This document shows, in pieces, positions 1,978 to 62,700 of a DNA stretch of 64,000 nucleotides; within the stretch, counting starts at the first letter, position 1, and every line of letters starts with the position of its first letter. The DNA lies in assembly GCF_000150275.1 (NCBI RefSeq), contig NW_002060948.1:1982918-2046917 (forward strand), written 5' to 3'. The notes under the pieces were generated by a model. It worked only from the letters and a program-made list of their open reading frames with translations, searched no databases and was not told where the DNA came from. Position numbers and translations under genes: made by a program. The stretch comes from Trichoplax adhaerens (lineage: Eukaryota > Animalia > Placozoa).

Positions 1978-4900
1978 ATGGCCTTAGCCAGTGCCAATGC
2001 AAGCACCAGCGCAAATGCCAGCGACAGCAATTTGCCTCGATTTGAGGCTTGCAATCCCAATTTAGAAAGAACAGAAAAAGACGTTATAGCTGCTAAGCAG
2101 CTAACTTCTCTTCGCCAAGGTATTGATCTCGTTCCAAGCCCAACTGATCATTCTATTCTTGATTCATTTGGATCCATTTTTGTCATCCTGTCTTCAAAGT
2201 TGCACAAGTATTATACTTATAGCATAACAGCCCGCTACTGAGCATGAATGGATTTGTTTATTGAGATGCATTTGACAGTTATTGACTGATGGGCAACCAA
2301 TCATCCATGATGGACGTATATAAACAGTACCGGACAGTTTATACTGTACACTGTACACTGTGCAGTCCAGTAGCGCAGGCTAGCGTCGACTACAGTGCGA
2401 AGTACTGTAGTGGGACTGGACTGAAGGACTGTGGACTTCAAGGATTGATTTGCAACAACAACTGTACCGGTCAGTCAGTACCTAGTCGAAGAAAGTGGAC
2501 TCAGTGTAGACTAATAGCGTAGTTGCTGCCTCGGCCATTTTCGAACCTCGAATACTGGATGATGGGGAAAAAAATAATAACAGCTGGCCTAGTCTGTAGT
2601 TGGCTGGGCATCAGCAGGACCTACCGGTAGTAACAATAGCATTACAGTATTGGCAATGACGACGCCGTAGAGGTATTGATCAAGGTGCCGAGAGATACTA
2701 CTGTACTCTACTGTGTAGTGTATGAAGATAGAAGATGACAGACATAACAAACATTTTACCATACGGTTTTCACTTTGCAGCCCTTGATAACATCAACAAG
2801 GGCTGTCTGGCTTTTCCTTCTATGTCCTCTGTACTGTAGGTGTTTGACAGTAGCGTTGCATCTTGCCTACCATCGAGTTAATCAATGGCATAGTATGCAT
2901 TTTAGTGCACAATGGGCGCTTACAAGCGTAGGCAATCCATGTTGATTGATTTGCAACACTGTCACATGACTGGAAGATACATAGCATTAGCAATCATGGT
3001 ACTCTTGGTAGAAAATGAAAGATTGATTTAGGCTGAAGAATACAGTATGTACAGTATATTGTTGATGCTAGTGCTGTAGTTTGATCAGTATTTCCATCTT
3101 GACTCCATACCAATTTGAAGAGTGTCGCATGACTGTACGGATAGCAACGACTATGGTCATAGGCCATATCATGGACTGCAGAAAATTGAAGATTGCCATT
3201 ACATGCGCTGAATAGTGTTATTATATTATTATTTATGCAAGTAGTTCCATCACTTCTTCCATCTTATACTGAATATGTCATACACTCTTTACATTGGTGC
3301 TCATTGGACAATCCATCATGCAAATTCATTTCATGTCTTACTCAGCTATTCTCCAGCAACCTGGATTGATGAAAAATTATCTTACTGCCAATAGAATTTT
3401 AATGACAGTATACGCCTACAGTATGTATGCATCCAATTATTGTTAATAGCTAGTCAGTCAAGAAATCGTCACCGGAACTGACACAGGCCTACTAAACCCA
3501 TTTCTACAATAAATACTTAATGAGATTTTTTTGACATATCCCTATGAATGAAATCCTGGTAATCTAAAACGAAAATTATTCTATCGTATCATGGATGAAA
3601 CGGTACTTAACTTTGATCATGTTCTAAATTATAGGAATAGAAGATAAGGACCATGCAATTTTAAACGATGATTTACAAATCATCACCCAAAATTCAACAA
3701 TGTGGTCAGATTATCCACAATCTCATCATCCGGATGAGATAGAAACGATTACTAAAGAAATCCAGGGTCCTCGCGAGACTGCAAATTACAATCCACAGTT
3801 ACTTCGAAGAGGTAATTTATCAATTATGATTAGTACCCGTTTTACAGAATACATTGGCATCGTACAATTTCAATTAGTAATACTCAACATTTCTAAGTGA
3901 TAATATTTAAATTGATGTTTCCTTTTTTAGCTGACAGCAAAAAAAGCAGAAGAGAGAGAGCACCTAAATTTATACAGTCTGCAGTAGATAATTTTGCACC
4001 AGGTGAACAATTCGCCAGCTATTCTGCTAGAGGCCCTAAACCTCCATTCAATTTTAAGCATATCGATCCCACTGAATTACATCAATCAACTACGTCAGCG
4101 TCGGTTGGAAAGGACGACCTGCCACAAAACAACTCAAAGCGTGAAAATAGTAATAGGACATTAACGGAGAATTCTGCTGACGTATCGGCTAAAAAGAGCA
4201 CTGCTATGTATCCCGGTGACAATAAGCAGATTCTTCAAAATGCTAATCAAAGTGTTACAGGCCAGGATCATGTGTAAGTTACAGTACTCAACGTAACACC
4301 TTTAATAGCAATTGGCTCTCTCTTACTGGGGTATATAGAGATGGTAGTCTCGTTGAGTTGCATTACGATCCCTTTTACACACATAGTATCATTGAAGCAG
4401 TTGGGTAACTTAAATATCCTGAGATCATTTATTGATTAATTTCAATTGAATAGGAATGGTCATAGCACGCGCCACCGGATCAAAAGACCGCACGACAATC
4501 AAAGTGACAAGACTTATGATGGTAAGCGTGCTATTCGAAAATCAATGGAGAGCTATCGTCGAGATATGAAAGAAGCCGTTGATGTAAAATCATCTGAGCT
4601 TGGCGGTATCACTACTGATATTAAAAATAGATCAACCAATAGATCAACGGATAAATCATCCAGGAGTTATTCTTCTACAGGTAAAATTGACAAACAGTTC
4701 GATCCAGTTTCTGAACAAGCAACAATGTCACCATCACGTGTTGAAAATTTGACTTCAACTGGATTATCATCATCAATGGCTGCTCCTACATCCTTTGGAG
4801 CTAGTACTTACTCATCTAGTCATGTTAATATATTCACTAGCGTTGGCGGGTCTGCAGTTACGCCATCAATACCAATAATGGAGCATCCAAGCAGTTGCTT

Positions 4901-7900
4901 CAGAGACGAAACCATGAGAAATGTTGGTATTCCTCATGGTGCTAGTGAACGAGCCGTTGTTGAAGTAGCAGCCGGTTATCATGCAATTCCTGGTCCTATA
5001 TATATAACCGGTCCATCAATCAGTAGCTACTCTACTGGTTCTGCTTTTCCAAGTACTCTTACTACTAGTGGAGTACAAGCTTGGCCGCATGCTGTCGACG
5101 CATCTATGTATTACCCTATACAATTTCAGCGTCAACACCCAGTCGCAAATATGCCTCAATCAAGTGCAGAATCCCTTAGCGGGTCAGCTATACTTAGACG
5201 TTCAGTCAATAGTAACACCAGTACATCTGTCAGTAAAATATCTACTTGTACCGTATTATCAAGTGATACAAATTCTACTTCATCATCTCAAGTTGCGATT
5301 GTTACTACATCTGCGGGTGCTAGTCTCCCAGATCCTACTGCTATCGCATTAAGTGTTGTACAATCAGCTGTGGCACCATCTCAGATTGAAAATACCGGAG
5401 CCATTCCAAATCCCTCTTCTTGGGCTCCTGTAAGTTGACCATTATGATGAATTGTTTAGAAAATTTTATCAATTATTTGTATTATTAATTGAATATACTA
5501 TCTTAATTTACAATTTAGATCTTACCGGCTCCAGGTCGTTATAGGTAATGAAATTATCTTGTTGTGTGTCACTAAGATAGATCTAAGGAGATAATGAATC
5601 AAAAATTTTCACATTGGATTAATGTATAATCGTTTCATTTTTCCAATGTAGTCCATCAGTTCTTGTCAATACCCAGGTAGTTTGCCCTGTTTGTAAAAGA
5701 TCTTTCAAGTCATCACGCTCGCTAAATGGTCACATGAGGCTTCACGGTGGTTTTGACAAGAATCGGGTATGATTATACAGCATTGTCAGGCACTAATTTT
5801 CTTGGTACATTAGTAGTTAGTATTTTATTGACATTTCATTCAAAATAGGTACAAAATGATGATGATTCGCGTAAAAGAAAGGCTGAAAATTCTGTAAGGG
5901 AAAGAGATAACTCTGGCACAAACTATAATACGGATAAATCAAATAACGAAATGAAAGAACTAGATTCTGTGGATGTTCTAGCTGTACGGCAATTGAATAC
6001 TCGCCCTAAGAGTGCGGCTACCGATACCATGGCAATATCCAGCAATATATCTGACGCTGATGCAGATCACAAACGTCATAAACCCAAACCGAGACCAGCT
6101 CCTTTGGATTTTCATAGCAATATTAATCAAATCGATAATTCTGGCAGATCATCTAGGCTACGACTGCGATTGGATACAAGTTTAAGCAATAGCGCAAACA
6201 GTGGAAGTAGTACTCCACCACCTTATACTCCTCCTCCTATGTTAACACCGAACCGAAAAAGCAACTACATATTTTCACCAACACTGCTGCATCCTAATTC
6301 TTCTGGTGGCGCTTCACAACTTAGACGGCGTAAGTAAGGTGTTGTATTTTTTTTCCAAATTTTGAACTAAATCTTATGATTACTATTGAATTTTCAGGTA
6401 CTAGTTCTAGTGCAGATAGTTATGACAGTGAGAGCTCCGATGATGATGCCGAAAGACTTGTTCCGTAAGTGATATCAAAAGAAATCCATATGATTTTTAA
6501 TTATATGATTTTTTTAACACTGTGCTATAATGTTTTGCAGTAAAATTAATGTAGGTGAAAGCTTTCAAGCAGAAATTCCTAGCTATGTTGGAGGTACATT
6601 TATTACCACACATATACCACGTTATTCTACAGAAGTATTCGATACAGTATCGTTTATTTAATGTTGTTATTTCATTTATAGATACAATAGATGTAACTGC
6701 TGAGGAAGACCATGCAGATCGCATTTTTATCTGTTCAGATGATCTTAATAGAGAGGAAGAAGGTGAAAGTACGTTTTATAGAAATTTTCTTCTTTTGTTA
6801 TCTATTAATAAAGTTTTATTAATAAATAAAAAGTTACTTGATACGTGTCAAAATCACAAAAAATGATATACTTGTAATAATGTACACATATAGTTGAAAA
6901 TTACCTTGAGTTTGCCTGCTCAGATGGTGTGCCTTTTGGGGGCAGAAATAAAGAATTTGCTTTGCATTGCCTGTATAAAGCTCAAGGAAACGTAAAGGTA
7001 AATCTTTAATGCTATCATATTATAATGCAAACTAATTGGCTCTAAGTACATTAATTGTCATTTCGTCAGCGAGCTCTACGTATGCTTTTACAAATGGAAT
7101 CCTGGTACAAAGAAACTGATGCCTTTTTAACCTATCATTATACAGGTACTCTACTTGCATTTGTAATTCAAGAATTATACTTGGATAAAAAGAGTAACTA
7201 AAATGATACTATCTATTATATTTACAGGCAGCTGCTGTTGGAGCGAAAAAGAAAAGAAAGCGTTTTATGAAGCGTACAGAGAACATCAGAAAGACTTTGT
7301 AGCAATTAATAAAGCGGTATCTGTTTTCCCCATTTTTAAAATAGAATTTCTTGTTGTATTTATACTAACCTTCAAAATGCAATACTTAGGTTCGAACTAA
7401 GACAGTCGAAGAATGTGTTGAATATTATTATTTATGGAAAAAGCTCTTCCCTGTGCAGTATCGTCGAAGAACACCTTATGTAATTATTAAAATGCACATG
7501 CATAGAAGAAGACATATGGGCTTATAGTGGTCCATACTTTAGTGACATTATTTTCAAAAGAGATTGATAATCCATTTTTTCACTAGGAATCGGAGCCTAG
7601 TGTTCCCAGGAGAGTGCGTAGAACATATCAACGTCGCTCTGTGTCCGTGTCTCCTGATACACGAAAAACTGCTGGTGCTGCAAGCAGTGAGAAAAGTAAA
7701 AGTGATAACAGTAGTGGCTTGTTCGTGTGTAACATTGGTGGATGTACAGCTGTAAGTGTGTTATGGCACAATAGTAAGATAATAATTTCTATTTTTGAAT
7801 GTAAGTTCATTGCAATGAAGGAATCTGCTTCTCTTGTACAGTCTTTTTCGTCGAAGCAGGCTTTAAATGGTCACATCCGTGTCCATGGTGGAAGACTAGT

Positions 7901-26942: not shown

Positions 26943-27657
26943 AAGTAGACGCAATATGAATGGCAATAAAACCGCATCTGACTATAGTACAGTGCTGTGC
27001 ACATCATCATTTTGACAATCCACCTGACTTGCGACTGCAGTAGACCCAATATGAAGGGCAATAAAATCACACCTGATTATAGTATAGTATACATCATCAT
27101 TTTGACATACGACTTCAGTAGAACCAATATGAAGGGCAATAAAATCACATCTGATTATAGTACAGTATACATCATCATTTTGACAATCCACCTGACTTGC
27201 GACTGCAGTAGATCCAATATGAAGGGCAATAAAATTGCATCTGATTATAGTACAGTATACATCATCATTTTGACAATCCACCTGACTTGCGGCTGCAGTA
27301 GATCCAATATGAAGGGCAATAAAATCGCATCTGATTATAGTACAGTATACATCATCATTTTGACAATCCACTTGACATGCGACTGCAGTAGATTCAATAT
27401 GAAGGGCAATAAAATCACATCTGATTATTGTACAGTATACATCATCATTTTGACAATCCACTTGACATGCGACTGCAGTAGATTCAATATGAAGGGCAAT
27501 AAAATCACATCTGATTATTGTACAGTATACATCATCATTTTGACAATCCACTTGACTTGCGATTGCAGTAGATCCAATATGAAGGGCAATAAAATCACAT
27601 CTGATTATAGTATAGTGCACACCATCATTTTGACAATCCACTTGATTTGCGACTTGA
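26943..27657. repeat. Tandem array, 90-bp unit, about 8 copies
   Basis: tacagtatacatcatcattttgacaatcca... recurs at 27161, 27251, 27341, 27431, 27521 and 27611. One copy carries a 12-bp deletion. Confidence 0.97.
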
Positions 27658-29694
27658 GTCATGGATTATTTCTACAGCCTGCTTACCGATATTATTTTCG
27701 TGATTACTGGTTACGGGTAAATCGTTTGGTACCATGTTTGTTTTGGAAATATTCGATCGCTATAATCTATTAAATTAAGACAAACACCCTTACGGACTAT
27801 GACTATACTGTACAATACTGGAAGTTCAAACGATGAGGCAAAACAATCACGTAGTGCCCTGCAATCGCAAGTCTGATCCACTCGTTTTATGGAAGTTATA
27901 ATGTAACGGATGCCGGACCGTTCCAGGTCTTGTCCTCCTCTCTATGGACGGACAGCGGTACAGTACAGGATTCTTCCTTGTACTGAGCGTGGTATACGGT
28001 GTACAGTATCGTTTGCGCAGAATCAGTGCTGCACAGTGAATGCACAGCTCGGGCACTGTCGTTTTACTGTAGTCTAGTAAATATGTGCCATAAAAAAAAA
28101 AAAAGCCCTAATAAAACAAGTAGTGCAGAAGACTTTGTCCATGCTTTCCATCACAACAGTACTGTCATAATATTAGGATCAATCTACAGGATGCTGGTGT
28201 TTGACTATCCAATATACAGGTTGTCCCAGTCCATTTTCCCGATCAACTTTGAAAATAAGACAATGAAATTTCTGTCGATTTTCAATAAAATACAAGTCAA
28301 TAATCGATAGAGGAAGAGTTAAATTACAAGAATCCGTTGACAGAATTTATGTACAAAGTGTGCATGCAATCCCATACATTCGATATTCCAATTTTGGCAT
28401 CCATTGGTACAACATCGATTGCAAATGCATGGTCTTAATATACAGTACAGTAGGTAACTTTCTATAATAAGGGACTTATATGTATAGGAAGGGTCGTAAC
28501 CATTGGTCTTTTTGAAGCGTTTTACTTCTAGTTCTTACCATTCAAACATATCCAAGGGATTACAGTGTAACTGGAACACGTGTGTGTACCCAGCGATGTT
28601 CACAATTCAATGTTAAATGTGCTACAATAACTGAACTAGAATAGACACCATCCGTCCTTCTAGTGACCCATGACTGGATATTGTCCTTATTAATGTACAG
28701 TATTTTCATACACTGGCGACTAGGCGATAATGTTGTACCATCAGCAGTGGACTACGACGGTATTTAGTAATCCGATATCAACGGACTATTAGTTGAAGCA
28801 TATAGTGCCGTTCAAGAGTAAAACTCGAGATTCAACTTTTGGCATGTATACTTAAATACTTCATAAATGAATAAAATACAGTGGCCACAAGTTCTCGTAC
28901 TACGGTTGTTGAAAATTTTTCGACCGGTACCAGAATTTGGACTTTAGAGTAGTGTACATATACTATAGCTGACCTTGAGAAGTCCTTTGAACAATAAACA
29001 TACAAGACGAGTATTACAGTATTTCCATTTCTTCCTTTACAAGCCATGCCAATGAGTCGATACGCGCATTTCGTCGATCGATTTACGCTTATGACTCAGT
29101 AAAAATAGCTTTCAACGAAGTGTAGCAGTTTATGCAAAATTGAGGGTATAGTTGCAGCTGTGTACTAAGCATCAGTATTATAGTAAAGGAGTATGCCACA
29201 ATATTCCACTTCCGAACGAAAATATACATATTATACATGTACGAGTACGTAGTGTAAATAGACAGATTATATGGAACACTGCTAAGTATGCTAGTATTAT
29301 TATCAATATCACTATCCCTATTCGTGTTATGACCTACTATTTCCTATAAGTAAACTCAACTCTGCCACTGTTTTAAAAGTAATGATATTATCATGTTTTG
29401 TTGACTATGAATTGTCATATATAATTGTATTACTACAGCTGCTACCACAAAATGGTGAAATAAATTGTATGTGCTGTGTCATATTGTTTTGGTGTTCCTT
29501 TCATTGTTCAGAAATGGTGACCAAAAAATGCCCAGTAGAGAATTGTTCATACTACTGTACTGTACAGTATATACAGCAGTTGATATCCTTCTCCTTTTCA
29601 CTCATACACAGTGAATAAAATGGAATCGTTACCGCACAGTAAAGGAAATAAATTCATAGAATAGTTGTGTAACAACGGTTGCTAAAAAATCCAA

Positions 29695-30810
29695 TTTCTG
29701 TACAAGTGATTCCTAATATTAGAATGAATATTTAAATGATCGATGTAATAGTGTTATCACTTGGCCGCACTATGGATTATTTGATGTTTTTATTTGCTGT
29801 ATACTGTATATGTACACGAGTGATTGTTAATATTAGAATGAATTAATGATCAATGTAATAGTGTTATCACTTGGCCGAACTATGGATTATTTGCTGTTTT
29901 CGTCTACTGTATACTGTATATCTGTACAAGTAATTGCTAATATTAGAATGAATATTTAAATGATCGATGTAATAGTGTTATCACTTGGCCGCACTATGGA
30001 TTATTTGATGTTTTTATTTGCTGTATACTGTATATGTACACGAGTGATTGTTAATATTAGAATGAATTAATGATCAATGTAATAGTGCTATCACTTGGCC
30101 GAACTATGGATTACTTGATGTTTTTATTTGCTGTATACTGTATATGTGCACGAGTGATTGTTAATATTAGAATGAATTAATGATCAATGTGATAGTGTTA
30201 TTATTACTTGGCCGAATTATGGATTACTTGATGTTTTTGTCTACAGTATACAGTATTAGTCAGTATATCTGTCCAAGTGATTGCTAATATTAGAATGAAT
30301 TAATGATCAATGTAATAGTGTTATCACTTGGCCGAACTATGGATTATTTGCTGTTTTTGTCTACTGTATACTGTATATGTGCACGAGTGATTGTTAATAT
30401 TAGAATGAATTAATGATCAATGTAATAGTGTTATCACTTGGCCGAACTATGGATTATTTGCTGTTTTCGTCTACTGTATACTGTATATCTGTACAAGTAA
30501 TTGCTAATATTAGAATGAATATTTAAATGATCGATGTAATAGTGTTATCACTTGGCCGCACTATAGATTACTTGATGTTTTTATTTGCTGTATACTGTAT
30601 ATCTACACGAGTGATTGTTAATATTAGAATGAATTAATGATCAATGTAATAGTGTTATTATTACTTGGCCGAATTATGGATTACTTGATGTTTTTGTCTA
30701 CAGTATACAGTATATCTGTCCAAGTGATTGCTAATATTAGAATGAATTAATGATCGATGTAATAGTGTTATTATTACTTGGCCGCAGTATGGATGTTTTT
30801 GTCTACTATC
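29695..30810. repeat. Tandem array, about 110-120-bp unit, 10 copies
   Basis: Core ttggccg(c/a)actatggatta recurs at about 29761, 29872, 29985, 30095, 30208, 30328, 30438, 30552, 30665 and 30778. Confidence 0.97.
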
Positions 30811-31502
30811 TACTGTACGTATTCCGTATTTGAATGTAAAGTAACTGTAATCAAAATCACCCTTGTCTTTCATGTTCACTAGAACAGTACTGTATAGTGT
30901 ACAGTGACTCACTACGATCGAATAATGGGGCATTTCACTACTGTACTTTGACACCACAAAGTTGACCCTATACAGCAAGATGACTCCTGTAGTAGGTGAC
31001 TCCAGCAAAATCGATCATCCAGTTCGACTGCTGCTTGAGTACGTTGCAACTGACGTCTCGCCAACTTTTCTACAGTACAGTACAGTAACACGACAGCATA
31101 CTGTGTCGTACGTACAACGACTGAAAGCAAATGGATAAATCGACCACTCACTCTTTGACAACAATACTACTGATAGGGTGATCACCGACCGACACGACTA
31201 CAGTAAGGTGAGTGAAGCGAAATCAAGTCGACCACTGTTTCACTATACTGTACTGTCATTAAGCAAGAGAAGAATAACAGGAACAATAATAACAATCCTC
31301 ATTGAGATAAAACACAATACTACGCAGGCTGACACTTTATTGTTCTCATTGATAACATCTCTGTTCGTGTCTCGTCGATCGGCAAGTCTATTTTGTCCTT
31401 TTTTGCCCAACTACTTTCGTTCTTCAATGTGGCGCGCAATCGATCTTTGACTGAGCTCAATCTCATCGGATTCACAATCTCGACAATAATCATCCATCCA
31501 AG

Positions 31503-40500: not shown

Positions 40501-43500
40501 TTTTATTTTAAGGTATCGGAGTAATGTTTGGGTTTCGATTTAATGTTGTACTAGCACTCTAGATTTATAACAAAGACCTCCATTTAACATATGTCTATAT
40601 TTCAGATCCATTTACATGCAAATCATCTGGAGGAAACGTTACAATCAACTATCACAAATGGTCTGGTTCGACTAGTAAAAAATCTTATGGTCCATGTTAG
40701 ATCATCATTAAGTGATCATTCATGTGGCAACTGTTCAACCGTATTTCGTAATTGTTCGCATTGCAAATTCTCATTAATGTTCTATATGTTGATACATGAA
40801 ATATTCAATAAAGTAACTGGGATAAATGAGCGATTCTCGCAAGATTTACACGATGACGAGGCAGCCATCAAAGTGGAAAGTCAGAGTAACACCGATATCC
40901 TTCCTGATAAGCGGCCTAGACGAAAAAGCGATTCACAACCCAAGAGTAGTACGTCGAATGAGTCAATTGGACTTACTAGAACTTCACTCATCGAAAGATG
41001 CAGTAAAAATAGAGAATATCCTTCGAAACGGAGGCCATTCGCGTCATCTTTAAAGGAGAAATCTAGTAGTAATGCAGCACTGCAAGTTTCTCGTATTAGA
41101 TCGATTTCTAGACATCGTCGTATTGACGAATTATTGCAGGTTCTGAAGTCAATCGTTCAGGAATTACAAATATGTAAAAATTCCGCAATTATATATTATC
41201 AATTACAGTGTATTAAATTATTATTACCTCCAAGCGAATTTATTTCTCAGTTTAAAAGTAGTGCTCCAGTTCGTGACCTAATTATTAAATTCCTGCTGCC
41301 AAATTTATGGTCATTGCTTCGATTTGATTCCTGTCAAGTTGCACAAGCATGCGGCACTTTGTTTATCCACTGTTTGTCATGTCGACAGATTAGCAACGCT
41401 TTTAAAACTATTATTACTGACTCACTCGATAGTCATAACTGGTCCGATCGTTATAATGCTATCACTAAACTATTTACTATGATTAATTTTATTGAAGTTA
41501 AAGAAATACTTGGATATCCTCCGTTACAATCAACATTGGCACACACGTTTTCGGTGCTAATATCAGGCTTATCTGATCAATCACCGCAAGTTCGTATTCT
41601 TGCATCCATTGGTTTTAAAAATATCAAATTATCTTGTATCGAAGTTGCAAAGTTATGTTTCCATCATCAGTATATAAACTATCCTGATGATCGTCCAAAA
41701 TTACTTTTTCGACTTGAACAATTACAAAAATGCTTACCTCGAATACAGGTTTTACGTTATGATTTGTTCCTATTATGGTTTGATGTCTTACCTGTGGGAT
41801 TAGACATCAACGATCGTCAACGATTTCCTTATTTATCGTTGGATCCTACCACATATCAGCATCAGAATGTTAGTAGTAAACTCAGCTTAACTACAACATC
41901 TAAGAATAGATTCAAGAAATCATCCGATCTATCCAGTTATAATCCTTTTAAAGTTTCATCTAGTTTACGTCGGTCAAGTAGTGGTCGCCGTTCATCAACT
42001 AGGCGTTGTAGTTCAATTATTTCGTCTAATTCATTCGATGTTACAGTTGCTGCTGATAATTTTTCGATCACTGATAGTTCAAGTTCCATTGATGGAGTTG
42101 TTATTGATTCAACGAGTCATAAGAGCACGACAGCAATACCATCTCAATTGTCGGTTGTAAATGATATTGATCCTGATGATATGAGAAATGAAACCATGTA
42201 TCGTCTAATTGAGTTATTTATGCAGTATTTACGTCGATCATCATCGACTAATTCTAAAATAGGCAATAATAACGACAACAGTCAATATCACATGAAAATA
42301 TTTCTTTGCATTCAACGTCTAATGGGTTATAACCATGTTACACAAATATTTAACTTATCATCTTCCAAGTTGAGATCGTCGCTAATTTATAAAGCGTTTT
42401 TAGTAGAAGCTCCATTAATGTTGGATACCTGTCTTACTCAAGGCAAGAAATTAATTACTTTCATCGTATCTGTGCTACACTATTGTACATACGTTCAAGA
42501 TACGGAGCAATATACCCTGTTAGCTTTATCACAATTTGATCGTCAAAATTGGTTTATGACTTTGCTAATTTTGCTATACAAGTATAACTTAAAAGATGTA
42601 TCGGCAGTAATATGCAAATTGATGGAATTAACAACCCAAATGATTGAAACTGCACATCATTTATGCCATCATGGAGCTAAAAATAACGGTAGTTTTATAA
42701 GGCATCGCATTTCAAGTAAGAACGATTTCAGTTATTGTCAGTCGATATCATTATGTGAACAACGTAATAGTATTAAAAGGAAAATGTTAACCAAGTTAAA
42801 TGTAATTGATACGGGAGATAATCAATTAGGTGTGCAAACCACTGTAGTGAATACATCGACTGAAATCGATGAGCGTAGTGTTCATTCGACATTGGCCGAA
42901 AAATTGGAAATGAATACCGAAATAGAAGTACAACAACAATCTGATAGTCAATCAAATCGCGATATTGCTAGGACTAGTGGTAGAGCTCGTGGAACTCTTC
43001 GACGAGAGCGCTCATTCGAAGAAGAGCCATTACCTGAAATAATTGATGATGTCAATGATAACGATGATTTTGATAATGATAATGATAGCAATCCACTCCA
43101 CGTTAACGAGCACCAAAACAACAATGATTACGATATCATTGATGATGCCATTACACAATCCAATCGCAAAATAAAGAAAAGGAATATATCAGCAAGCGTA
43201 CCGCAATCTAATCTGACCTATAATCCATCTCATAATAGTCGTTTAGATGATATCGAAAATAGAATATTTGATATAACCAAATGCATCAAATGTGGTGAAT
43301 TAATTAGCGCTTATGATCAAGAAAATATTTGTCTTGGTATATTAGTACTATCCACCTTTGTCTATCGTTATCCGGAAATGGCAGCACCTCAATTATTACG
43401 TATATTAAGATGTATCGCCAGGATTACGTCCAGAAAAGGCACGCTATTGCATCATAATGATACTTTCGTATGCGACAATCCAGATCATTTGTCGAAAGTT

Positions 43501-45114
43501 TCAACTCAGGTCTTCAAATGTATCTTATTACAATATTTACCGCATGGTATATTTCCACAATTATTTAAAAGTCATATTAGCGATGATCAATTTTTGCCAG
43601 CTATGGCTAAATTACTGAGCGACTTTAGTGAATTCGATCAAATGGAGCCATTATATAAGTTATTCGAGTATATTAACAATAACAAAATAACCAATCGTGA
43701 AATGAAAATTATACTGGATAATCTCGCCAATTACATGGATAATCTATCAAATGAAGCACACTTTGCATGGCAGAATGTAATATCGCATTTAGATACATTC
43801 TTTAAAAAATTACCTATATTTATTAAGGGCTTACAAGATGGGGCTCCATTAGCGCGCATTATGGTAGCCATATTTAAATTACCAACTAATAGTAAAAATC
43901 TATTACAAAGTATGGGCCATTGCTTTGCAGTAGCTCTGCGCAATGTACCGTTTTCTACTGCATCATTTACTGAACTGTGTATTCAGTGCTATTGGTCATT
44001 TGCAAAGGAAAGAGAGAAACTTTATTTTACACGTTGTGCAGTGACAGAACTTGTTCATGCATTAAAGTCCAGAATTATATTACCTGCCGATAACTTTGTT
44101 AAACTAGCTCAGTTAGTATTTTTAGATACTGTTGAAGGCAATACAGATTTAAATTTTATTGATACATCATCAACAACATATCAAGGATCACAATCGAATG
44201 CGCTAGAATTATTCCGACAGTACCTACCTGAAGCAGTTGAATTTCTTGGCAGTGGAGATGTTAGTGTAAGATTTGAAGATTTAGTAACGAGTAAGAGCTC
44301 CGTTATTGGTAACCTAAAAATTATGATCGCTAAAATTATTGCATTTGAAATAACTAATAATAATAACAATAACAATAATAACCGTGATTTAAAATATATA
44401 ACAAGATTAATGCCTTGGTTTCATCAAAGGCAATCACAACCAACACGTTTTCAGTTACAGGAATGTGTCTCCCAAGTTAGGATAGTATGTTGGTTGCTCG
44501 TTGGCAGTCTGCATCATTACGTTGAGTCGTCAACTACATCATCGATTTATACACCGTTTTTACCTTCAGATATTGTTGTTATTGAGCGTGTACTAAATGT
44601 GTTCAATTCTATTGCATCGAAAGGACGTGAGTCATCGGAATATTTATCAGCAATACCACCTATTCTTATATTATGCCAATTATGGACGGTCTACTGCGAA
44701 CAGTATATGAATAGTCGGTGGCAATTTAGTGAATTTTCAAGTACTAGTGTTATACCAATTTTAATTGACTTTTGGCAAGAAGTCACTTCGGCACTGTTGC
44801 AGGTAGTATCGGAAATACACGATTTACATGTGCACGTTATTGGTCAATTTTTTACTACTGTGGAAAGCTTGAAAGAATGTAACTCATTTATATTTCATGA
44901 ATATTTCCCATCTTGGATATCATTTTTAAGCGAAAATTGTAATCAGGCAAATAGAATTGATCGCCTACGTCATTTACAAGAATGTACTAGTAAGGACAAT
45001 ATTACCGATAATCAAACAGTACTAAAAAGATGGCTACATCGAGTACAATTGCAAATGGCACAAAACGAATTACAAGCAACTGTACATAATAATAAATCAC
45101 AATATATTGTTTAA
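31503..45114 (+). CDS. UNC79: UNC-79 homolog (NALCN sodium leak channel complex subunit)
   Basis: Exon 1 31503-31518 (MAVEE) splices to ~34506 giving MAVEEFTAKVHILKE (compare human MSTKAEQFASKIRYLQE). Further motifs: LSPFLDLQQLQTLPSIITSTL; Cys-rich AVVTCFSLSCTKSCGSRPMRLCSTCD; VWDLLMPTWMENIR; RLSCFILMLDIIVKQ. Final exon 40606-45114 has IIYYQLQCIK, ENICLGILVLSTFVYRYPEMAAPQLLRILRCIARI, ECVSQVRIVCWLLVGSL and LCQLWTVYCEQ. Confidence 0.93.
33125..33710. repeat. Degenerate tandem triplication, about 195-200-bp unit, in UNC79 intron 1
   Basis: aat(c/a)tactctaccgtaagtt(g/a)att...gcagcttgacagatgc...ggcttgtga recurs at about 33131, 33331 and 33526. Confidence 0.9.
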
Positions 45115-54504: not shown

Positions 54505-56606
54505 CGCATAGAAACTGCAAAGTGCAATCTATGGCTTGGCTTTATAAAGCGTATTTGTACTAGAATATTGATAAGATGGGGAAACACAAGCTGTTTATTA
54601 ATTAGCCATTAGAGCGTGGTATTGCTGCCTTGACTAATTATGCAGACGATGACTTTACCCCATCTTCTACGTATTTATCTTACTATTAATATGCACTTAT
54701 CTTACATACTGTTCTTTATCGTACTACGCGTATTACTAAATATAAGCAAATTGTTGTGAGGCTATCATTATATTATATGCTATACAGTAGTTTTGTTGAC
54801 AATACGGTTGACATACTGTAACTGTGTTAACGTATAATGGTTAAAATTGTAGATCTAGTAGCATTGTTCTTACACAACATACAGCATGAATAAGGTAACC
54901 AATTTGATGATATGACTACTCTATTGATAAGTATATGCGTGGTTAATGAATGAAAACAAATGTTGAACAAGAGAATAGCTTCCTTTCTGTATTTAATCTT
55001 GTCATTTGAGTACCTTATTTGTACACGTTTGTTTTGTACTGCGGTTCTTGTAAAGTTGTACTACAGCGTAGAGGTTACTTATTCTACTTTTATAGAAGGC
55101 AATTGTTATATTTTATGTTTTGATTGACTGATTTAATTTTATTGCATTGGTTTGCACTTCTTGTGTGGCGTAGTAGCGAATAGTTATAACTTGATTATAT
55201 GTGATAACGAGTAATTACGCTCGCCATCCGTTGTATGATAACGATTAGACAGTTTATTTGTGAGGGTCAAGTATTTTTTAACGTTATAATAATAAAAGAT
55301 ACCATCTTTTCTGGAAGCAAATCTCTATATCATCTTAATTACTCCAGTTTATACAACAAATCGATAATAAGACGATAATTTATCAATGTGTTGTGTCAAA
55401 ATGCAGTGATAGTAAAACTTTACGCCTACTACTACTTTTGAAGGAAGGAATTCGTCGTATTTTAGATATAATTAGGGATCCCCAACGGTCGGTTCAACTC
55501 AGTCTGGCACGCAATTTTTAAAACAGTTTACATTTTTAAAGTCAATTATAGGTATTATAACTTTATTTTTAGAATTTTAAAATGAATTAACATGAAGGAT
55601 TGAAATTGAAATTACAGTAATTTAGGATTGTTGAGTTTGATAGTTTAAGGTTAAAAATTATTATTTATGCTTTATGATAGTACGGTACTGTATAAGGGCT
55701 AGTTCTGCTGGCAGGCCAACTAATCTATTACTCATAACTTAAAAATACAAGTTTATCACATTGCTATATTGTTATAGCGCTGTACTGTAAGCCACAGCCT
55801 TTTTAACTTTCAATGAATAAAAGATACGATGATTGAAAAGTAACTGCCATTACAATTACAATGTACTCATCTTCATAGTCAACATTACCATGAAAATAAA
55901 ATCAAGCAACATATCTTGTAACCTTTCCATAATAAATAATATAATATCAATCCCACGTCATATAGCACAGAAGAATTACAAGCACTTGCGCTGCACGTGA
56001 ATATCTAATAACCTTTCCTACCGTACATATAGACGGGTAGACACGATGTCAATATTACTGTATGACTTTCTCTTACAACGTGACCGTAGCTTTTCTTAAT
56101 TAGTCCTACTATCATAGTAATGCTATGAGTACACAATCAGCAGACTAAATCAAGAGACAGACGAACATCGTAAAATTATGAGCAAACATGACAGCATTCT
56201 AATAATAACGTTTAAAAAAGATAAGTTTAACTCGGTAAGTATTCAGAATCATTACAGTATTTAAGCTATTCTCTACACTTCAATTCAAGATGGATCTCGC
56301 CAGTAGTGAAGGGTAGCAGTCCGTCAATAAATACTACTATTACTATTATCATTATTATTTATTTCATAAAATCATCTACTATAGAGTCGTTGCAATGAAA
56401 TCAAGCTGAGAATTATACTATAACTAACAAAAGTATTTTTTTTTCGAAGCTGAAATCATCGTAATAATACTGAACGCACCAGTCTAAGGCGGTATAGACC
56501 CTATATCGTAGGGCTATCCAAAATTTGCCAGCTAGATTGAAATTGATTCATTCTTGACAACGACAGATAAATAGTAAGAGCGTCCAATCATAATTCTATC
56601 TGTGCT

Positions 56607-57542
56607 TTAAGGCAATGTAAAGGGTGAAGGACTTGATCCAAATTGATTCCTCGTGGATAGGCTATTAGTACTTGCACTGGTTATCATAGTCATTGTTGTC
56701 GTGGTAGATGTATTATCCAGTTTATTGGATGAGAAGTCGGTCAGGTTACCAGCAGAGACGACACCAGAATTGACAAATAAGCTTTTCAAGACGGATAATT
56801 CTTTTGTTAATAGTGATAACTTTGTCTTTAATTCTTCATTCTCCATGCTTAATTGCATGACCCTTTCTTGGGTTTCCATCGATTTTAGCTTCGTCTTCTT
56901 GCGGCTCTTTCGTACCGCTTCATTATTGCGTTCACGCTTACGACGGTATTCATCACTGTATTTATTCAATGATTTCCTACTGTTACTACCGCTGCCAGCG
57001 TCTAAAGATTCTGTTAGTAGATCTATATCTTCATCAGGTGTAATTGCTGCTGATTGCCTTGTGTTGTGATCGCTGGCCACTATGTTTGTCATAGTCGACA
57101 TGGCACCAGCTGTAGTCGATGTTGTGGTACTAGTTGTAACAACATTGGTATCGTCGTAACTTTTTAAGGATAAATTCTTATAATTATTGACCATACTTGC
57201 AGTTGCAGGATTAGCACAGGTAGTAGAAGAAAATGAGTTAACAACCGTAGTGATTGTAGGATCAGCAGGTGATTCTGATACCAATCGAAATAGTAAATCT
57301 TCGTCAGCAAGATTGGATTTGGGTTGATGAATATTAGTTACGTTGGCAGTGACGAAATACGAGGCTAAATCGATCGATGATTCGTTGGCAAGTATTTCTA
57401 ATTGAGTAGAGCCACTGATTTCTCCACGAAGATCACTTCTATCCAGTAATTTCTCTTCTTGCGGATTACAATTACGAGTACTACCTTGATAATAACTGAA
57501 AGGAAGGCAAGAACGTGAGTATCGATCTACTTTACGATCCAT
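56607..57542 (-). CDS. C/EBP family bZIP transcription factor (alpha/beta/delta/epsilon-like, with activation-domain motifs); intronless CDS, 311 aa from the first in-frame ATG
   Basis: Basic region and zipper KYSDEYRRKRERNNEAVRKSRKKTK...VMQLSMENEELKTKLSLLTKELSVLKSLF. N-terminal NESSIDLASYF and DEDLLFRL resemble C/EBP activation boxes (ETSIDISAYI, DEFLADLF). The ORF-track start at 57632 is TTG; the first ATG is 57542. Confidence 0.93.
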   Translation of the reverse strand: MDRKVDRYSRSCLPFSYYQGSTRNCNPQEEKLLDRSDLRGEISGSTQLEILANESSIDLASYFVTANVTNIHQPKSNLADEDLLFRLVSESPADPTITTVVNSFSSTTCANPATASMVNNYKNLSLKSYDDTNVVTTSTTTSTTAGAMSTMTNIVASDHNTRQSAAITPDEDIDLLTESLDAGSGSNSRKSLNKYSDEYRRKRERNNEAVRKSRKKTKLKSMETQERVMQLSMENEELKTKLSLLTKELSVLKSLFVNSGVVSAGNLTDFSSNKLDNTSTTTTMTMITSASTNSLSTRNQFGSSPSPFTLP

Positions 57543-57574
57543 CAAGCCGTCGTCGTAGACGATCGGTGTGTCAT
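57542..57574 (-). other. Upstream ORF (10 codons, MTHRSSTTTA) whose TGA overlaps the C/EBP ATG
   Basis: Minus strand reads ATG ACA CAC CGA TCG TCT ACG ACG ACG GCT TGA TG. It is out of frame with the CDS, and the A of TGA is the A of the main ATG. Confidence 0.8.
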
Positions 57575-58045
57575 TCAATCCTGCACTAGGCAGGCGATAG
57601 GAATAATAAGCTGAAAGGTCCAGCCTTTCCAATTGTAGCGAGCGACAACTGAAATAGTTGACGACCGATTCTCGATGTCAGTAGATTACTGTACCGTAGA
57701 AAAATACAGTACCGATCACACAATACTGTGCAGTATAGTGTACAGTACAACGTCAACAGAATAGAAATATTCAATGAAAGGATAAATAAATAAATTGTTG
57801 CAATCCTACAGATATACAGGAAAGTATAGACGTACAGTAGAGAGAGGGGAAAAAAAGTACCCTGCTGAACAAAATAAGACGGAAAGAATTAATTAAAAAA
57901 GAAGGTAGCAATCGGTTGAAGAATCCAATCTGTAAGTGGACTATTCAACTCGACTATTTAGTTAAGGTAAGCTGTCAAGGAAACTCGGGTAAGTTTCCCT
58001 CAGTCTACGCCAAAGGATATGATAGAATGTGGGTGTAGTGTTGAT

Positions 58046-58095
58046 CTTTTTAAGACGTTGACTAATCTGTAGCAACTGTCTACGCGCGTCCAATC
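58046..58095 (-). promoter_or_regulatory. Candidate C/EBP core promoter (TATA-like CTTAAAAAG plus a CCAAT box)
   Basis: CTTAAAAAG on the minus strand at 58054-58046 and CCAAT at 58090-58094, near the upstream end of the AUG-free leader. An alternative TATATAAATA lies at 58830-58821. Confidence 0.3.
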
Positions 58096-59247
58096 CCCCA
58101 AAAACCAAAAAAATAGGAGGGGTATATCAACTTGTTAATACTGCATCTATCAACTTGTGCGTACAATATAACTTGAAGGCATTAGCAAATTGAAAAACTT
58201 GTATGAATCATAAAGTAAGAATATTGAGTAAGTTTGTAATTAAAAAGAATTGAAAAGAAAAAACAACAACAGCTTACTCTACTCCAATACAATCTTAATA
58301 TCTGTAGTTATAATAGTGACAAATAGAAGGAAACAACACAGAAGTAGACACATAAAAAAGAAAAAACACACAAGAAAAATGGACTACTATAATTGAGGCA
58401 GTATACCAAAAAGGTTGTTATGATGAAAAGATGTTCAACTATCGGACATGTGTAGGCGTCGAATCGCCGGTGTACTATACTAGACGATGCGTTATCGTGA
58501 TTGGAATCAATGATCAAAATTAGTCGTGTAGCAATGTTGGCAATGTGAGCGTATTACAAAGGTGAGGCAGACTTGCTTGGGCCAACAAGTTTACAAGAGA
58601 CGAGAAAGAAGGCAAAAAAAAAAAAAAGTAAAATAAGAGGGCAGAGAGGCAAGTCAAGGGTCGATGATAGGCAATAAGAGGGAAAAGAATAAGTGGAAAG
58701 CAAGTGCAAGCAAGAAAAAGTCTACAGTGCGTTGAAAAAGTGGCAAAGTGATGCTAGTCCAAATGTGCAAGCAAACATCGATTTGGATTTACCTTGATAT
58801 TTCAACACGCCACTACAGCTTATTTATATAGCCTTGGACAATTTGTTCCAGGAATAGTATTTTTAAATGTTCACTTAACCACTTGGCTGCAAAGTTCTAT
58901 TCCGGGCGTTCCCACCGCCACAAGATGCTCATTAACCAACTAACTTAATTGCCCCCGAGTAATTGGATTTGATGAAAAGAAAATTCTTCCTTTCCAATTA
59001 TCTTCAATCACTTGTTTTGGAATTTTGTCGCTACTAATATGGAGACGACGAGCGGACAATGCCCCTAATATATATGGTAGGGCAAGGAGGGTTGATCTAA
59101 AAATAGATTGCTGCCGGGGTGGGATGATGCAATCATCGGTCACAACCAGTCGACGAGTCGTGGTCAGCATGCCACGATCGGCAGGCAGGTCGGGTGAATG
59201 CGCAGGGGTACTGAATCGACATGGTGGATTGACGGTACTGAAGGCTC

Positions 59248-59725
59248 AAGTGCTGTGACGTGTCCAAGCACTGTACAGTGTACAGTCGAAGAGAGTCTCC
59301 AGCGTACCGTACCGTACCGTACTGGGTGGTTCCGTTTCGTTCCGTTTGCGAAGTAGAACATCATATAACGTCATGTTGTCGTACTGTACCCACTCAGAGT
59401 ACAGGATCTGACCAGACCATGAAAACCTGTCAGGACAGTACTGTACACTGTACTGACTGAAGTGCTGTGACCTGTTCAAGCACTCTACAGTGTAGAGGAG
59501 AGACCCTCTATGAAAAGAGAGTCTCCAGCGTACCGTACCGTACTGGACCGTTTCGTTCCGTTTGCGGAGTAGAACATCATATAACGTCATGTTGTCGTAC
59601 TGTACTGTACTGTACTGTACCCACTCAGAGTACAGGATCTGACCAGACCATGAAAACCTGTCAGTACAGTGTACACTGTACAGTACTGTACTGTACTGAC
59701 TGAAGTGCGGTGACCTGTCCAAGTG
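59248..59725. repeat. Tandem duplication (about 210-240-bp unit, two copies plus a partial one) built on TACCG/TACAG pentamers
   Basis: gagagtctccagcgtaccgtaccgtac...ccgtttcgttccgtttgcg...cccactcagagtacaggatctgaccagaccatgaaaacctgtcag starts at about 59290 and again at about 59516. Confidence 0.93.
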
Positions 59726-62700
59726 TCCATGGTCAGTAACTAGACAGTACTGTACAGTCTACAGTCTACAGTACTGTAGACTGCAGTTGGAATCGTACTG
59801 TACGGTACTGCACTTCAGTCCGAATGAAACCAATTGGCACTTGCTAAGGTCAGAAGTGAGAGGGACCCTCCCATCGATGGTATTTCACACCAGTGTTGAG
59901 AAGACCGCACCCGCGGCTCTGCTCATCCTTCATGAGCAGCAAATCCAAGACTGCAGTTCATGTTGTCAACATGAACTGCAGTAGTCCAGCTAGTCGACAA
60001 GCTTTTCAAACTGGTCTTAATTCACCTTCACCCTGATAAATGCAAAATAGTACAATTTCCCATACCTCCGGCAGTGATCAAGTGGCTATTAAGGGTAAAC
60101 TAAGGGACAACCATCTATTACTTCCGTCCGTAGCTGACAAGAAATCATGACTCCAGTTTTTTCTAGCATTTCGTCAGTTTCATCTTAATTCATTCATTCA
60201 TTGAAAGCTGCACCAGCGCAAATGAGTGCAAAATACGGTAGTCAACAATGTTTACTACAACGGGGAACGGGCGCCGCGTATTCGACAATTAAAAATATCG
60301 CTCGCCATATGTACGCGTATATTCTATTTTAAATCAAGTGAATGAATGATTACAAGAAATCATCATTGTCCCATCTCGTCGATAATACCAGCAACAACAA
60401 TATTAACAATAACAACGCATACACCAATACCCATAAAACCGAAATAGCAAAAGTGTCAATTCGATAATGATAGTAAATTATATTAAAATGCCATTTCCAA
60501 ATAAAGACTGTACCATAGAAATTTTCAACCATCAAAAATCAAATTCAAATTTTCAGATATTCTTTCTTGCTTTTACATTTAGAGAAGCAACAAAACTCAT
60601 CGACTTGCCAACAGAGTTGGCATACGCGTATAGCCTATCGAAGTTACAATAAAGTGAACTAGACAAGTCAATATATGCACATTATATGTTAGACTGCGCT
60701 GGTAAACAAAGCATTATATTTATTGACGAATAGTATTCGATGCAGTCCTACTAGGAAAGACAATTTCAACGCTATGTTATCCATTGCGCTAAAGCCGATA
60801 ACGCTAATGAGTGACTACTGTTTATAGAATAGAAAAGAGATGCGTGTTTTCCTAATCTTACAATTTTCCATAGTTTATTCAACAATTATCGAACAAGACG
60901 TATCGTAATGTGATTAATCAATTCTAATATCATATAGTCTGTAGCATCGCTATGTTAGGCGTAACTGCGGTCTATTCACTAGCTGATCGATGGCCTATCA
61001 TCTCCAATCTCAACTTACAATCCATACGTGGTTAATATTCGACTTGAATAATACTTAATCTATAATCACATTATAATTGATCAAGTTATCGTAAAGCAAT
61101 TACATTTGCTCGGTAAGTGGTCGTCTTAAATGCCTACAGTAGTACGCTAAATAATGGAGATGATAAATAGTAGTCAAGTACAAAAATGGTAGTATTTGTA
61201 TTGAACATTTGATATTTTATGATCAACATCAATTGGAACATAAAAATCATTTTACTAAGCCACCTAAAGTAGTTGTAAGTATCCTGTTTATCAGGGAACT
61301 ATGATTCAATGCTTGGTATTATACAATCTGGCTATAGTATCGATCGAGAATGATAGCAATAACGATCAACTTAAGTAGTAGTAGTAGTAATGTCAATAAG
61401 GATTTCTTATAATTTCAAATAATCGTTTTTTTAATTTAATTACCATCCGATGAGCTAAATCAATCCTTTTTGTACTAATGCCATTTATAGATATGAGCTG
61501 TCAGTACAATCTATTGTATAAGGATAATGCCATTAATAATTTAGCTTAGGTAGTATCACCCCAAAGACTACTATGCTCCATTCGTGACGCCTTTTCCAAC
61601 TGTTTATAGTATATCAATCAAATGATACATAAAACAAAAATGTTCTACGCCACAATCTATCAAACATATGCTACTACGATAAAAGAGAATAATTTTTTTA
61701 TTATTTTCTTTTAGGAGTTATTACCGCTGATGCTTCAATTGAAAAACTCTCCGTCCACCCTATTTTCTGTTCTAAAAAAAAATCAAAAATAAATATTCTA
61801 GAGATAATTTCATTAAAATAATTATAAATGATTGATTACTATATAAAAATAATCAATAAATTTTATGATGGCGTAATGACTCTATATCCAGACAGATAGT
61901 CATTAATTATATTGTAAGCATTACATAATTAAAATGAAATAGAAAGACACTGTGTTGTTAAAAAAAAATTCAATGCCTTCCTATCACTACTACTTGAATT
62001 CTATTTCATTGACAACTCTGATGCATACATATTGAACAACTATTACAACAATCAACGATTTTCGCATGATAAAATTAGTAAAATACCGAAATTATCATTC
62101 GCATAAATCTACGTAACGATAGACGGTACACATAATTTAACTAATATTATCAAGTACTCATCCACTCCATCTTGACCTTCCTAGTATACATCAAGATTGA
62201 TACCTTAAAATATTTGACTGAATATTTAAGTATATTATTCTATGACATGCAGCTGCCACTAATAGATGAATCTAAACTAAAAATTGTTAAAGTGTTGGTT
62301 TAATTTTAGCCATAAGCTTATATTCCATAAAAAGTCATCCACTCTTCCATTTTACTTAAGCTTATTGATGAATAAAATAATCTCTATTCAATTGCATCTC
62401 AAAATAGTTATTTTTATTTTCAATTGTATCTATTCTTAACTTTTTCTATCTTGTCAATCAATAATAGTATCTATTATTTCATTATATTAAAAAGGTATCA
62501 ATGATAACTATAAATTGACATAGACTTGATAGATGTTGATTGTTAAGCAGATTGAGTGTCATTCTAAGCAACCCCGAGGAATTAATCAATTAAAATACCC
62601 AAATCATTTTGAAAGTTTTCATTATAAAGCGGTATGTGCTTTTAAAATATAAATAACATTCTAAGTAATTGTTTCTGTATCTACTACTAAATCTAATTTA

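Follow-up and report, generated by a model that had tools for sequence, protein, structure and literature searches.

Does the only C/EBP gene of the placozoan Trichoplax adhaerens produce both a long activator and a short protein reduced to its basic leucine-zipper domain (bZIP), and, if so, is the choice between the two made in the way known from vertebrates? In vertebrate C/EBP-alpha and C/EBP-beta, a short out-of-frame upstream open reading frame (uORF) lies between the start of the extended isoform and a suboptimal main AUG and redirects ribosomes to the strong AUG from which p30 or LIP is made, ending 7 nucleotides (nt) before the p42 AUG in the case of C/EBP-alpha (PMC3045505). The ratios of long to short vertebrate forms control proliferation versus differentiation as well as metabolism, and are a textbook case of uORF-mediated control. 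An initial annotation of the stretch studied here, a window of 64,000 nt from contig NW_002060948.1 of assembly GCF_000150275.1 (positions 1,982,918 to 2,046,917), proposed that the Trichoplax gene holds a switch of the same kind. We assign a probability of roughly 50% to a different reading, in which the choice between long and short C/EBP would be made mainly by splicing that removes start codons, together with leaky scanning, and not by a vertebrate-style uORF switch. All coordinates refer to the window, and the gene lies on its minus strand.

The locus is the sole C/EBP gene of T. adhaerens (Triad1 9287) and comprises two exons. The bZIP segment of its open reading frame (ORF) is identical to the segment classed as CEBP for Trichoplax Triad1 9287 (PMC4736632, supplementary file 2). 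The ORF of 311 amino acids (aa) matched Pfam bZIP_2 (2.7e-14), and its top matches among solved structures in the PDB were all C/EBP-beta or C/EBP-alpha (9e-17 to 8e-11; best C/EBP-beta match 9e-17, best C/EBP-alpha match 7e-11), compared to only 2e-4 for NFIL3. As expected of a family member, a C/EBP-type basic region (R-x-R-N-N-x-A-V-R-K-S-R) is followed by a leucine zipper:

56772..56963, minus strand: C/EBP-type basic region and leucine zipper (Pfam, PDB, PMC4736632).

The gene, exon 1 included, is single copy in the assembly (105,631,681 bases in 1,414 contigs). The ATG at 57194 is preceded by two activation boxes, SIDLASYF (57377-57354) and DEDLLFRL (57305-57282), which follow the N-terminal pattern of the family (E-x-S-I/V-D-L/I-S/A-x-Y/L ... 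D-E-x-L). The N-terminal box, E-x-S-[VI]-D-[LF], is common to the C/EBP homologues of Lingula, Glandiceps and Tachypleus, and in an alignment of these with six further animals E54, S56 and D58 were invariant or nearly so. We take the Trichoplax boxes to be the equivalents of the 'ETSIDISAYI...NDEFLADLF' boxes of vertebrate C/EBP-alpha.

At the level of the DNA, the start codons are laid out just as the initial annotation had described. Exactly two ATGs, at 57574 and 57542, occur in the 949 nt from 58143 to 57195, the neighbouring ones being at 58146 on one side and at 57194, 57145 and 57101 on the other. The first opens an out-of-frame uORF of 10 codons (MTHRSSTTTA, then a stop) in weak context (tgaATGa), and the stop of this uORF (TGA, 57544-57542) overlaps by its A the second ATG (TGATG), which begins the long ORF and is called AUG1 below. 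The ATG at 57194 (AUG2) is in frame and in strong context, with 195 aa remaining, and that at 57101 is in frame too. The features are as follows.

57542..57574, minus strand: uORF of the initial annotation, from ATG 57574 to TGA 57542; intronic in the major mRNA and absent in both placozoan relatives.
56607..57542, minus strand: long ORF of 311 aa that begins at AUG1 (ttgATGg, T at -3); for the major mRNA, codons 1-16 (57542..57496) are part of the intron.
56607..57194, minus strand: short ORF from AUG2, 195 aa, context agtATGg; the bZIP is kept and the activation boxes are gone.
57575..58143, minus strand: ATG-free zone of 569 nt in the 3' half of the intron, a possible leader of an mRNA that retains the intron or starts at an internal promoter.

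The scarcity of ATGs is not a matter of chance. Judged against 2,000 dinucleotide-preserving shuffles, the 949 nt should hold 13.1 ATGs instead of 2 (P<0.0005), the 569 nt upstream of 57574 should hold 6.8 and hold none (P<0.0005), and the first 347 nt of the coding sequence should hold 5.6 and again hold none (P=0.001). Only one other ATG-free gap longer than 572 nt exists in the entire window on both strands, and three of the six longest gaps on the minus strand fall in this locus. The longest gap in the window, a stretch of 1,216 nt on the minus strand (29657-30873; A 0.40, T 0.30, G 0.12), has no notable ORF near it and may be another long scanned leader or compositional.

The RNA adds an intron to this layout. 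Contigs of four public runs (X1, X2, X10 and X12) were aligned to 56300-62200. X10 and X12 are RNA by record, X1 behaved as RNA, and X2, which covered every bin evenly, behaved as DNA; two studies supplied the three RNA runs, and signal of the X10/X12 type stems from random-primed total-RNA libraries. Depth was zero at 59058-59254 and at 59846-62200 in X1, X10 and X12, and the empty flank at 59846-62200 indicates that the signal in the intron is RNA and not contaminating DNA. A joint between 57495 and 58793, present in X1, X10 and X12 and absent from the DNA-like X2, skips 1,297 nt bounded by CT..AC on the plus strand, which is GT..AG on the strand of the gene. The contig carrying the junction had depths of 180.7, 237.7 and 840.5 in X10, X12 and X1, respectively, compared to 74.8, 77.5 and 19.6 for the contig running through the skipped interval (57468..58822). 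Upstream, the RNA contigs end at 59022-59040. The transcript is thus built from the following parts (a slash marks a splice position).

59066..59076, minus strand: CATATATATTA, a TATA-like element belonging to the upstream promoter P1; the RNA contigs begin about 30 nt further downstream, and the element aligns with TATATATA in the relative L001.
58793..59040, minus strand: exon 1, a non-coding 5' exon present in RNA contigs of X1, X10 and X12; the splice joint sets its 3' boundary, and its 5' boundary is approximate.
57496..58792, minus strand: intron of 1,297 nt, GT..AG, holding the ATG-free zone, the uORF of the initial annotation, AUG1 and codons 1-16 of the 311-aa ORF.
57496..57497, minus strand: 3' splice-site AG in use, ccttcctttcAG/T, missing in both relatives (cctcttAA/T).
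56365..57495, minus strand: exon 2 as covered by RNA contigs (those of X10 and X12 cover 56365..57497); the aligned region stops at this point, as does a repeat that was skipped, so the 3' limit is a limit of coverage.

In most RNA, the upstream AUG (uAUG) at 57574, AUG1 and the ATG-free zone are intronic. The initial annotation had proposed that the uORF is carried by the mRNA and had likened the gene to the intronless C/EBP genes of vertebrates. For most of the RNA, neither view holds: the dominant transcript splices downstream of 57574, and the GT-AG intron that is removed from most RNA (58792..57496) takes with it the uORF, AUG1 and a CUG described below. An intronic non-coding RNA as the source of the intron depth was ruled out, as Rfam gave no match in 56300-59300 and Tandem Repeats Finder none in 57400-60000. 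A high-copy dispersed repeat with TACAGTA/ACTGTAC-like words occupies 59255-59845 (X2 depth 1,400-11,000, with dozens of joints and loose ends), and a weaker copy of it sits inside the intron at 57679-57875 (X2 depth 285).

Two relatives (contigs L001/L002 and L003/L004), whose proteins are 74-75% identical to the query, were used for comparison; a scan of metagenome contigs for further placozoan copies found no relative. The uORF at 57574 turned out not to be kept in these close relatives, in which ttgacaacc/ttgaccacc replace ttgaATGac, and no ATG occurs upstream of AUG1 in 418 nt of L001 or in the 232 nt available of L003. The uORF is known from the Trichoplax lineage only and may be an innovation of that lineage.

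These observations bear directly on the mechanism that had first been proposed, in which, on an unspliced mRNA, the uORF at 57574 would block reinitiation at AUG1 and ribosomes would scan the 345 AUG-free nt to AUG2, giving a 311/195 ratio tuned by nutrients and stress as in vertebrate C/EBP-alpha/beta. Some RNA containing the region does exist (the intron contig), the 569 nt upstream of the uORF are free of ATG, and the DNA layout, exactly as described, matches the vertebrate order once the conserved CUG is included (PMC3045505). However, splicing removes the uAUG and AUG1 from the majority of RNA of a gene that is not intronless, the lack of the uAUG and of any other ATG in the available leader of both relatives means that the uORF is not a conserved part, and no mapped 5' end gives a leader free of seven other uAUGs in the intron and exon 1. 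We consider this mechanism quite improbable.

What, then, does the spliced mRNA encode? We derived its frames from coordinate arithmetic and exon-wise translation, not from a joined sequence of exons 1 and 2. Stops close every frame of exon 1, and two features lie ahead of AUG2.

58897..58932, minus strand: uORF1, opened by exon 1's only ATG (58932) in weak context (ttaATGa); MSILWRWERPE, then a stop, 11 codons.
57195..57495, minus strand: exon-2 segment in which the bZIP frame is open and no ATG occurs in any frame; it encodes both activation boxes and lies upstream of the first usable AUG in the spliced mRNA.

Across the junction, uORF1 is in the bZIP frame (140 nt, or 46 codons plus 2 nt, with 57495 as third codon position); this frame is closed by a TAG at codon 12 and again at 58815-58813 (codon 40), and six codons are open before the junction. 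The junction itself creates no ATG (AAG/TTA), and the first ATG after uORF1 in the spliced mRNA is that at 57194, 405 nt past the uORF1 stop. Because this is the next AUG, the major mRNA is predicted by AUG initiation to be able to give only the 195-aa protein, with the bZIP and without SIDLASYF and DEDLLFRL.

Compared to L001, the core of exon 1 (58977..58820) is 79% identical, rising to about 95% around its uAUG. L001 keeps the TATA element, the GT donor and the uAUG and first 11 codons of uORF1 (33/34 nt identical), and its uORF runs to 32 codons. Indels of 4 and 5 nt relative to L001 after uORF1 indicate that exon 1 is not coding. The uORF1 stop is also polymorphic among Trichoplax strains: a C>G change at 58897 in X1 converts TAG to TAC, with a uORF of 39 instead of 11 codons as the result, and a C>T change at 58916 in X10 and X12 replaces Arg6 of uORF1 by Gln (R6Q). 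The uAUG is thus kept, and not the peptide. The ATG at 58932 as the real start of the spliced coding sequence was rejected, given the stops at codons 12 and 40 and the 4- and 5-nt indels relative to L001.

The 3' end of the intron carries the marks of a translated sequence. Homology with the relatives begins abruptly at 57628-57637, in an invariant block (AAAGGCTGGACCTTTCAGC) that includes a candidate start codon:

57621..57623, minus strand: conserved CTG in optimal context (aAGGCTGg, A at -3 and G at +4), candidate non-AUG start of an extended isoform of 338 aa.

Upstream of AUG1, the main frame stays open for 45, 29 and 34 codons in the window, L001 and L003, respectively, and it is open from the CTG to AUG1 in all three; in L001 a TGA stands two codons before the CTG. 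Between the CTG and AUG1, the ratio of nonsynonymous to synonymous divergence (dN/dS, Nei-Gojobori) was 0.19, 0.23 and 0.07 in the three pairwise comparisons (about 0.2 for the window against the relatives and 0.07 for the relatives' pair). The differences between L001 and L003 over this interval fell 0/2/8 on codon positions 1/2/3 (P 0.003), and all indels were multiples of 3. The 16 codons from AUG1 to the acceptor gave dN/dS values of 0.23, 0.23 and 0, with 13/14 residues of MDRK.DRYSRSCLP identical in the three species. Because of the low dN/dS, the third-position differences and the multiple-of-3 indels, we take the 3' segment of the intron to be real coding sequence that would be translated somewhere. 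The CUG at 57623 is the only candidate start for the extension shared by the three species, and a 338-aa form is probably made from it; in C/EBP-alpha, the extended isoform likewise starts at a CUG. Synonymous divergence from the CTG to AUG2 (0.4-0.6) was about one third of that downstream (1.3-1.9), which points to an extra constraint at the nucleotide level on the part that doubles as leader.

Upstream of the conserved block, the intron cannot be aligned with the relatives, and it is free of ATG all the same: the unalignable 506 nt of the window hold none of 5.7 expected (P 0.0005), and the matching non-homologous 322 nt of L001 none of 3.4 (P 0.015). A scanned leader running from an internal promoter would be expected to have this appearance. 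Two short islands stand out in this otherwise unalignable intron and may be regulatory or promoter elements, namely 99 nt at 58383-58477 (73% identity to L001:693-781) and the word AATGCCTTCAAG at 58172-58184 (about 1022-1034 in L001), which lies just upstream of the start of the ATG-free zone in both species. The block at 58477-58383 was rejected as a conserved start, L001 having no ATG there.

A possible, if rather unlikely, alternative is that the intron RNA is pre-mRNA only and that the gene has essentially one product, either the 195-aa protein or a near-full-length one initiated at a near-cognate codon near the junction, with the upstream coding signature as the legacy of an ancestral structure still used by the relatives (exon 1 joined at the AG before the CTG or at TTTCAG/C). 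The junction exceeds the intron contig 40-fold in X1, and the acceptor at 57496 is lineage-specific. Two conserved acceptor-like AGs, at 57626-25 and 57612-11, stand exactly at the start of homology, and the relatives may splice exon 1 to them; dN/dS is also somewhat higher for the window against the relatives (about 0.2) than for the relatives' pair (0.07). Nevertheless, the ORF is still intact 45 codons upstream of AUG1, with indels in multiples of 3 and a dN/dS of about 0.2 despite synonymous divergence of 1.3-1.9 elsewhere in the gene. The exon-2 activation boxes are conserved, yet under this alternative they would be untranslated leader unless non-AUG initiation took place, and the ATG-free unalignable 506 nt would be left without explanation if they were never scanned.

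A related candidate, an upstream coding exon joined via TTTCAG/C (AG 57612-11), was set aside: exon 1 offers no second ATG, the reading frames do not match in the window, and the intron contig is unbroken at 57610 in the three RNA runs, passing through both acceptor-like AGs; the join is unsupported among the joints listed and may be used at a low level. The invariant block at 57608-57626 (minus strand) could also form an 8-bp hairpin (AGGCTGGA-CCT-TTCAGCTT), flagged by a bacterial terminator scan, with the two acceptor-like AGs within it.

Downstream of AUG1, the three placozoan sequences share a layout suited to leaky scanning. AUG1 is weak (ttgATGg/ttaATGg) and AUG2 strong (agtATGg in the window and L003, agcATGg in L001) in all three; the Met of AUG2 is conserved within an invariant SMVNNYKNLS, and codons 2-116 contain no ATG in any frame in the window, L001 or L003. 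Resampling of synonymous codons for the given protein predicted 2.9, 3.9 and 4.9 ATGs in these codons (P 0.009, 0.0008 and 0.0002). The arrangement characteristic of the vertebrate switch is therefore found here: a suboptimal main AUG, a strong in-frame AUG between the activation boxes and the bZIP, and no AUG between them. Outside placozoans, Met117 (AUG2) is not positionally conserved. Among five single-exon C/EBP homologues (L009 and L011-L014), four have an in-frame ATG past the activation box as the first one to follow AUG1. Out-of-frame ATGs ahead of the basic region are lacking in three of the five (1.6-2.2 expected), and as none of these deficits is individually significant we did not use them as support. 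In four of these genes (L009, L011, L013 and L014, with MDGSF/MADSF-type N-termini), the ATGs from the start to about the basic region are all in frame, with one exception in L014, and the first internal Met lies past the activation box, again a non-significant trend for each gene.

Could the ATG depletion and the order of start codons be a by-product of composition or chance with no translational role? The 3' part of the intron is T-rich and G-poor, the antisense count of CAT is low as well, a 1,216-nt ATG-free stretch occurs elsewhere in the window, and the survey of five homologues gave only non-significant trends. We nonetheless regard this explanation as highly improbable, as the shuffles and the synonymous resampling control for composition and protein and still yield P values between 0.009 and <0.0005, both for the three species and for unalignable sequence. 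The contexts of the AUGs are also conserved, and this locus holds three of the window's six longest minus-strand gaps.

The reading we favour, splicing that removes start codons combined with leaky scanning, would work as follows. The TATA-type promoter P1 gives RNA with the non-coding exon 1 and its weak uORF1, and in most of this RNA splicing to 57495 deletes the uAUG at 57574, AUG1 and 16 codons, so that, with AUG starts alone, translation of the major mRNA would begin at AUG2 (57194) and yield the 195-aa bZIP-only protein. Long forms (311 aa from AUG1 and probably 338 aa from the CUG at 57623) would come from the smaller share of RNA in which the 3' part of the intron is still present, either because the intron is retained or because transcription begins at an internal promoter ahead of the ATG-free zone. 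On RNA of this kind, with AUG1 weak, AUG2 strong and no ATG between them, some ribosomes would leak to AUG2. The ratio of long to short protein would be set first by splicing or promoter choice and second by leaky scanning, and the 10-codon uORF would be at most an accessory that shifts ribosomes from AUG1 to AUG2 on the minor RNA. Of the original proposal, the idea of an activator and a bZIP-only form is supported by the spliced mRNA's having no AUG start other than 57194 for the bZIP frame, the conserved AUG contexts, the avoidance of ATG, the purifying selection from the CUG onwards and the sharing of uORF1 with L001; what falls away is the 10-codon uORF as the main mechanism.

Several points weigh against this reading. 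The 195-aa, 311-aa and 338-aa forms are all predicted products, and whatever goes further than the structure of the RNA and the statistics of the sequence is inferred. The RNA evidence consists of assembled contigs, not reads, and contigs cannot show 5' ends or quantitative isoform ratios; they also gave no sign of an internal promoter. The intron signal amounts to about 35% of exon depth in random-primed total RNA and to 2-6% in X1, and the intron-containing RNA is possibly plain pre-mRNA; in X1, the intron contig ends at 58771 and fails to reach the donor by 21 nt, which is a weak hint that the intron RNA is not simply the unspliced P1 transcript. Unspliced RNA from P1 has seven further weak-context uAUGs (opening ORFs of 3-24 codons) before AUG1, so AUG1 would be poorly translated on it. 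A near-cognate start on the spliced mRNA, where six codons are open upstream of the junction, could give an almost full-length protein, and the case for the CUG is drawn from 27 codons with few substitutions. Finally, because neither relative has the acceptor at 57496, the splice-based switch may be confined to Trichoplax, and the shared features could have served a purely translational mechanism in the ancestor. The two relatives (P0002 and P0003) are 89% identical to each other, so the three species represent two deep lineages, in which gain and loss of the uAUG and of the acceptor cannot be told apart.

The shared features lead us to a more tentative and, in our judgement, unlikely proposal on origins. 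The placozoan ancestor may already have had a C/EBP isoform logic made up of a non-AUG start for the extended form, a main AUG in weak context, an activation domain devoid of AUG and a strong AUG further in for a bZIP-only competitor, possibly homologous to vertebrate ext/p42/p30 and LAP*/LAP/LIP; Trichoplax would then have added the acceptor inside the coding sequence, which hard-wires the mRNA for the short isoform, and a vertebrate-like uORF ending on AUG1. Compared to vertebrate C/EBP-alpha (ext/p42/p30) and C/EBP-beta (LAP*/LAP/LIP) (Calkhoven/Leutz; PMC3045505), the Trichoplax gene belongs to the same family and has its activation boxes followed by a strong in-frame AUG before the bZIP. 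It also has a suboptimal main AUG and an upstream in-frame extended start, the order in the DNA being CUG, uORF, weak AUG1 and strong AUG2. Unlike the vertebrate genes, which are intronless and make all isoforms from one mRNA, it has a 1.3-kb intron whose removal takes the uORF, CUG and AUG1 out of most RNA. Also unlike them, its uORF is absent from the sister placozoan lineage, and the uORF shared with L001 belongs to another exon, at the 5' end, and precedes AUG2 by 405 nt in spliced RNA (a distance taken from the window only). The output would be alike, a long and a bZIP-only form (both predicted here), and the route different.

Truncated repressor isoforms made by alternative promoters or splicing are known from CREM/ICER, deltaFosB, deltaN-p63/p73 and dnTCF/LEF. 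Like these, the Trichoplax gene would pair a full-length activator with a form limited to DNA binding and dimerisation, chosen at the RNA level; unlike CREM/ICER-type genes, it would achieve truncation through an intron of the 5' untranslated region whose acceptor lies inside the coding sequence, which turns the remaining N-terminal coding sequence into an AUG-free leader. To our knowledge, truncation of a C/EBP by such an intron has not been described, and a literature search for isoforms, uORFs or splicing of C/EBP in placozoans turned up no paper. The spliced mRNA also resembles GCN4/ATF4-type delayed reinitiation in its layout: close to the 5' end stands a short uORF whose context is weak to moderate, and a long stretch devoid of AUG comes after it. 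In contrast to GCN4/ATF4, the uORF is the only one, with no second, inhibitory uORF that overlaps the main ORF, and it varies in length (11, 39 and 32 codons).

If a placozoan makes both kinds of protein, the activator/competitor design of C/EBP would be far older than the vertebrate uORF, and the same design could be run by different machinery, be it start-codon-deleting splicing, leaky scanning or non-AUG starts. Should the ancestral logic proposed above be true, the gene would offer a natural case of one activator/repressor decision moving between translational and splicing control. Gene models drawn from the ORF (311 aa) and from the transcript (195 aa) would conflict, although each may be correct. 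All this is directly testable, in a culturable animal with one C/EBP gene.

Elsewhere in the window, two plus-strand ORFs had no Pfam match, one of 330 aa (4446-5438) and a single-exon ORF of 1,507 aa with Asn runs (40591-45114). At 26982-27773, a tandem repeat of QVDCQNDDVYCTIIRCDFIALHI, present about 8 times, gives long repeat-derived ORFs on both strands.

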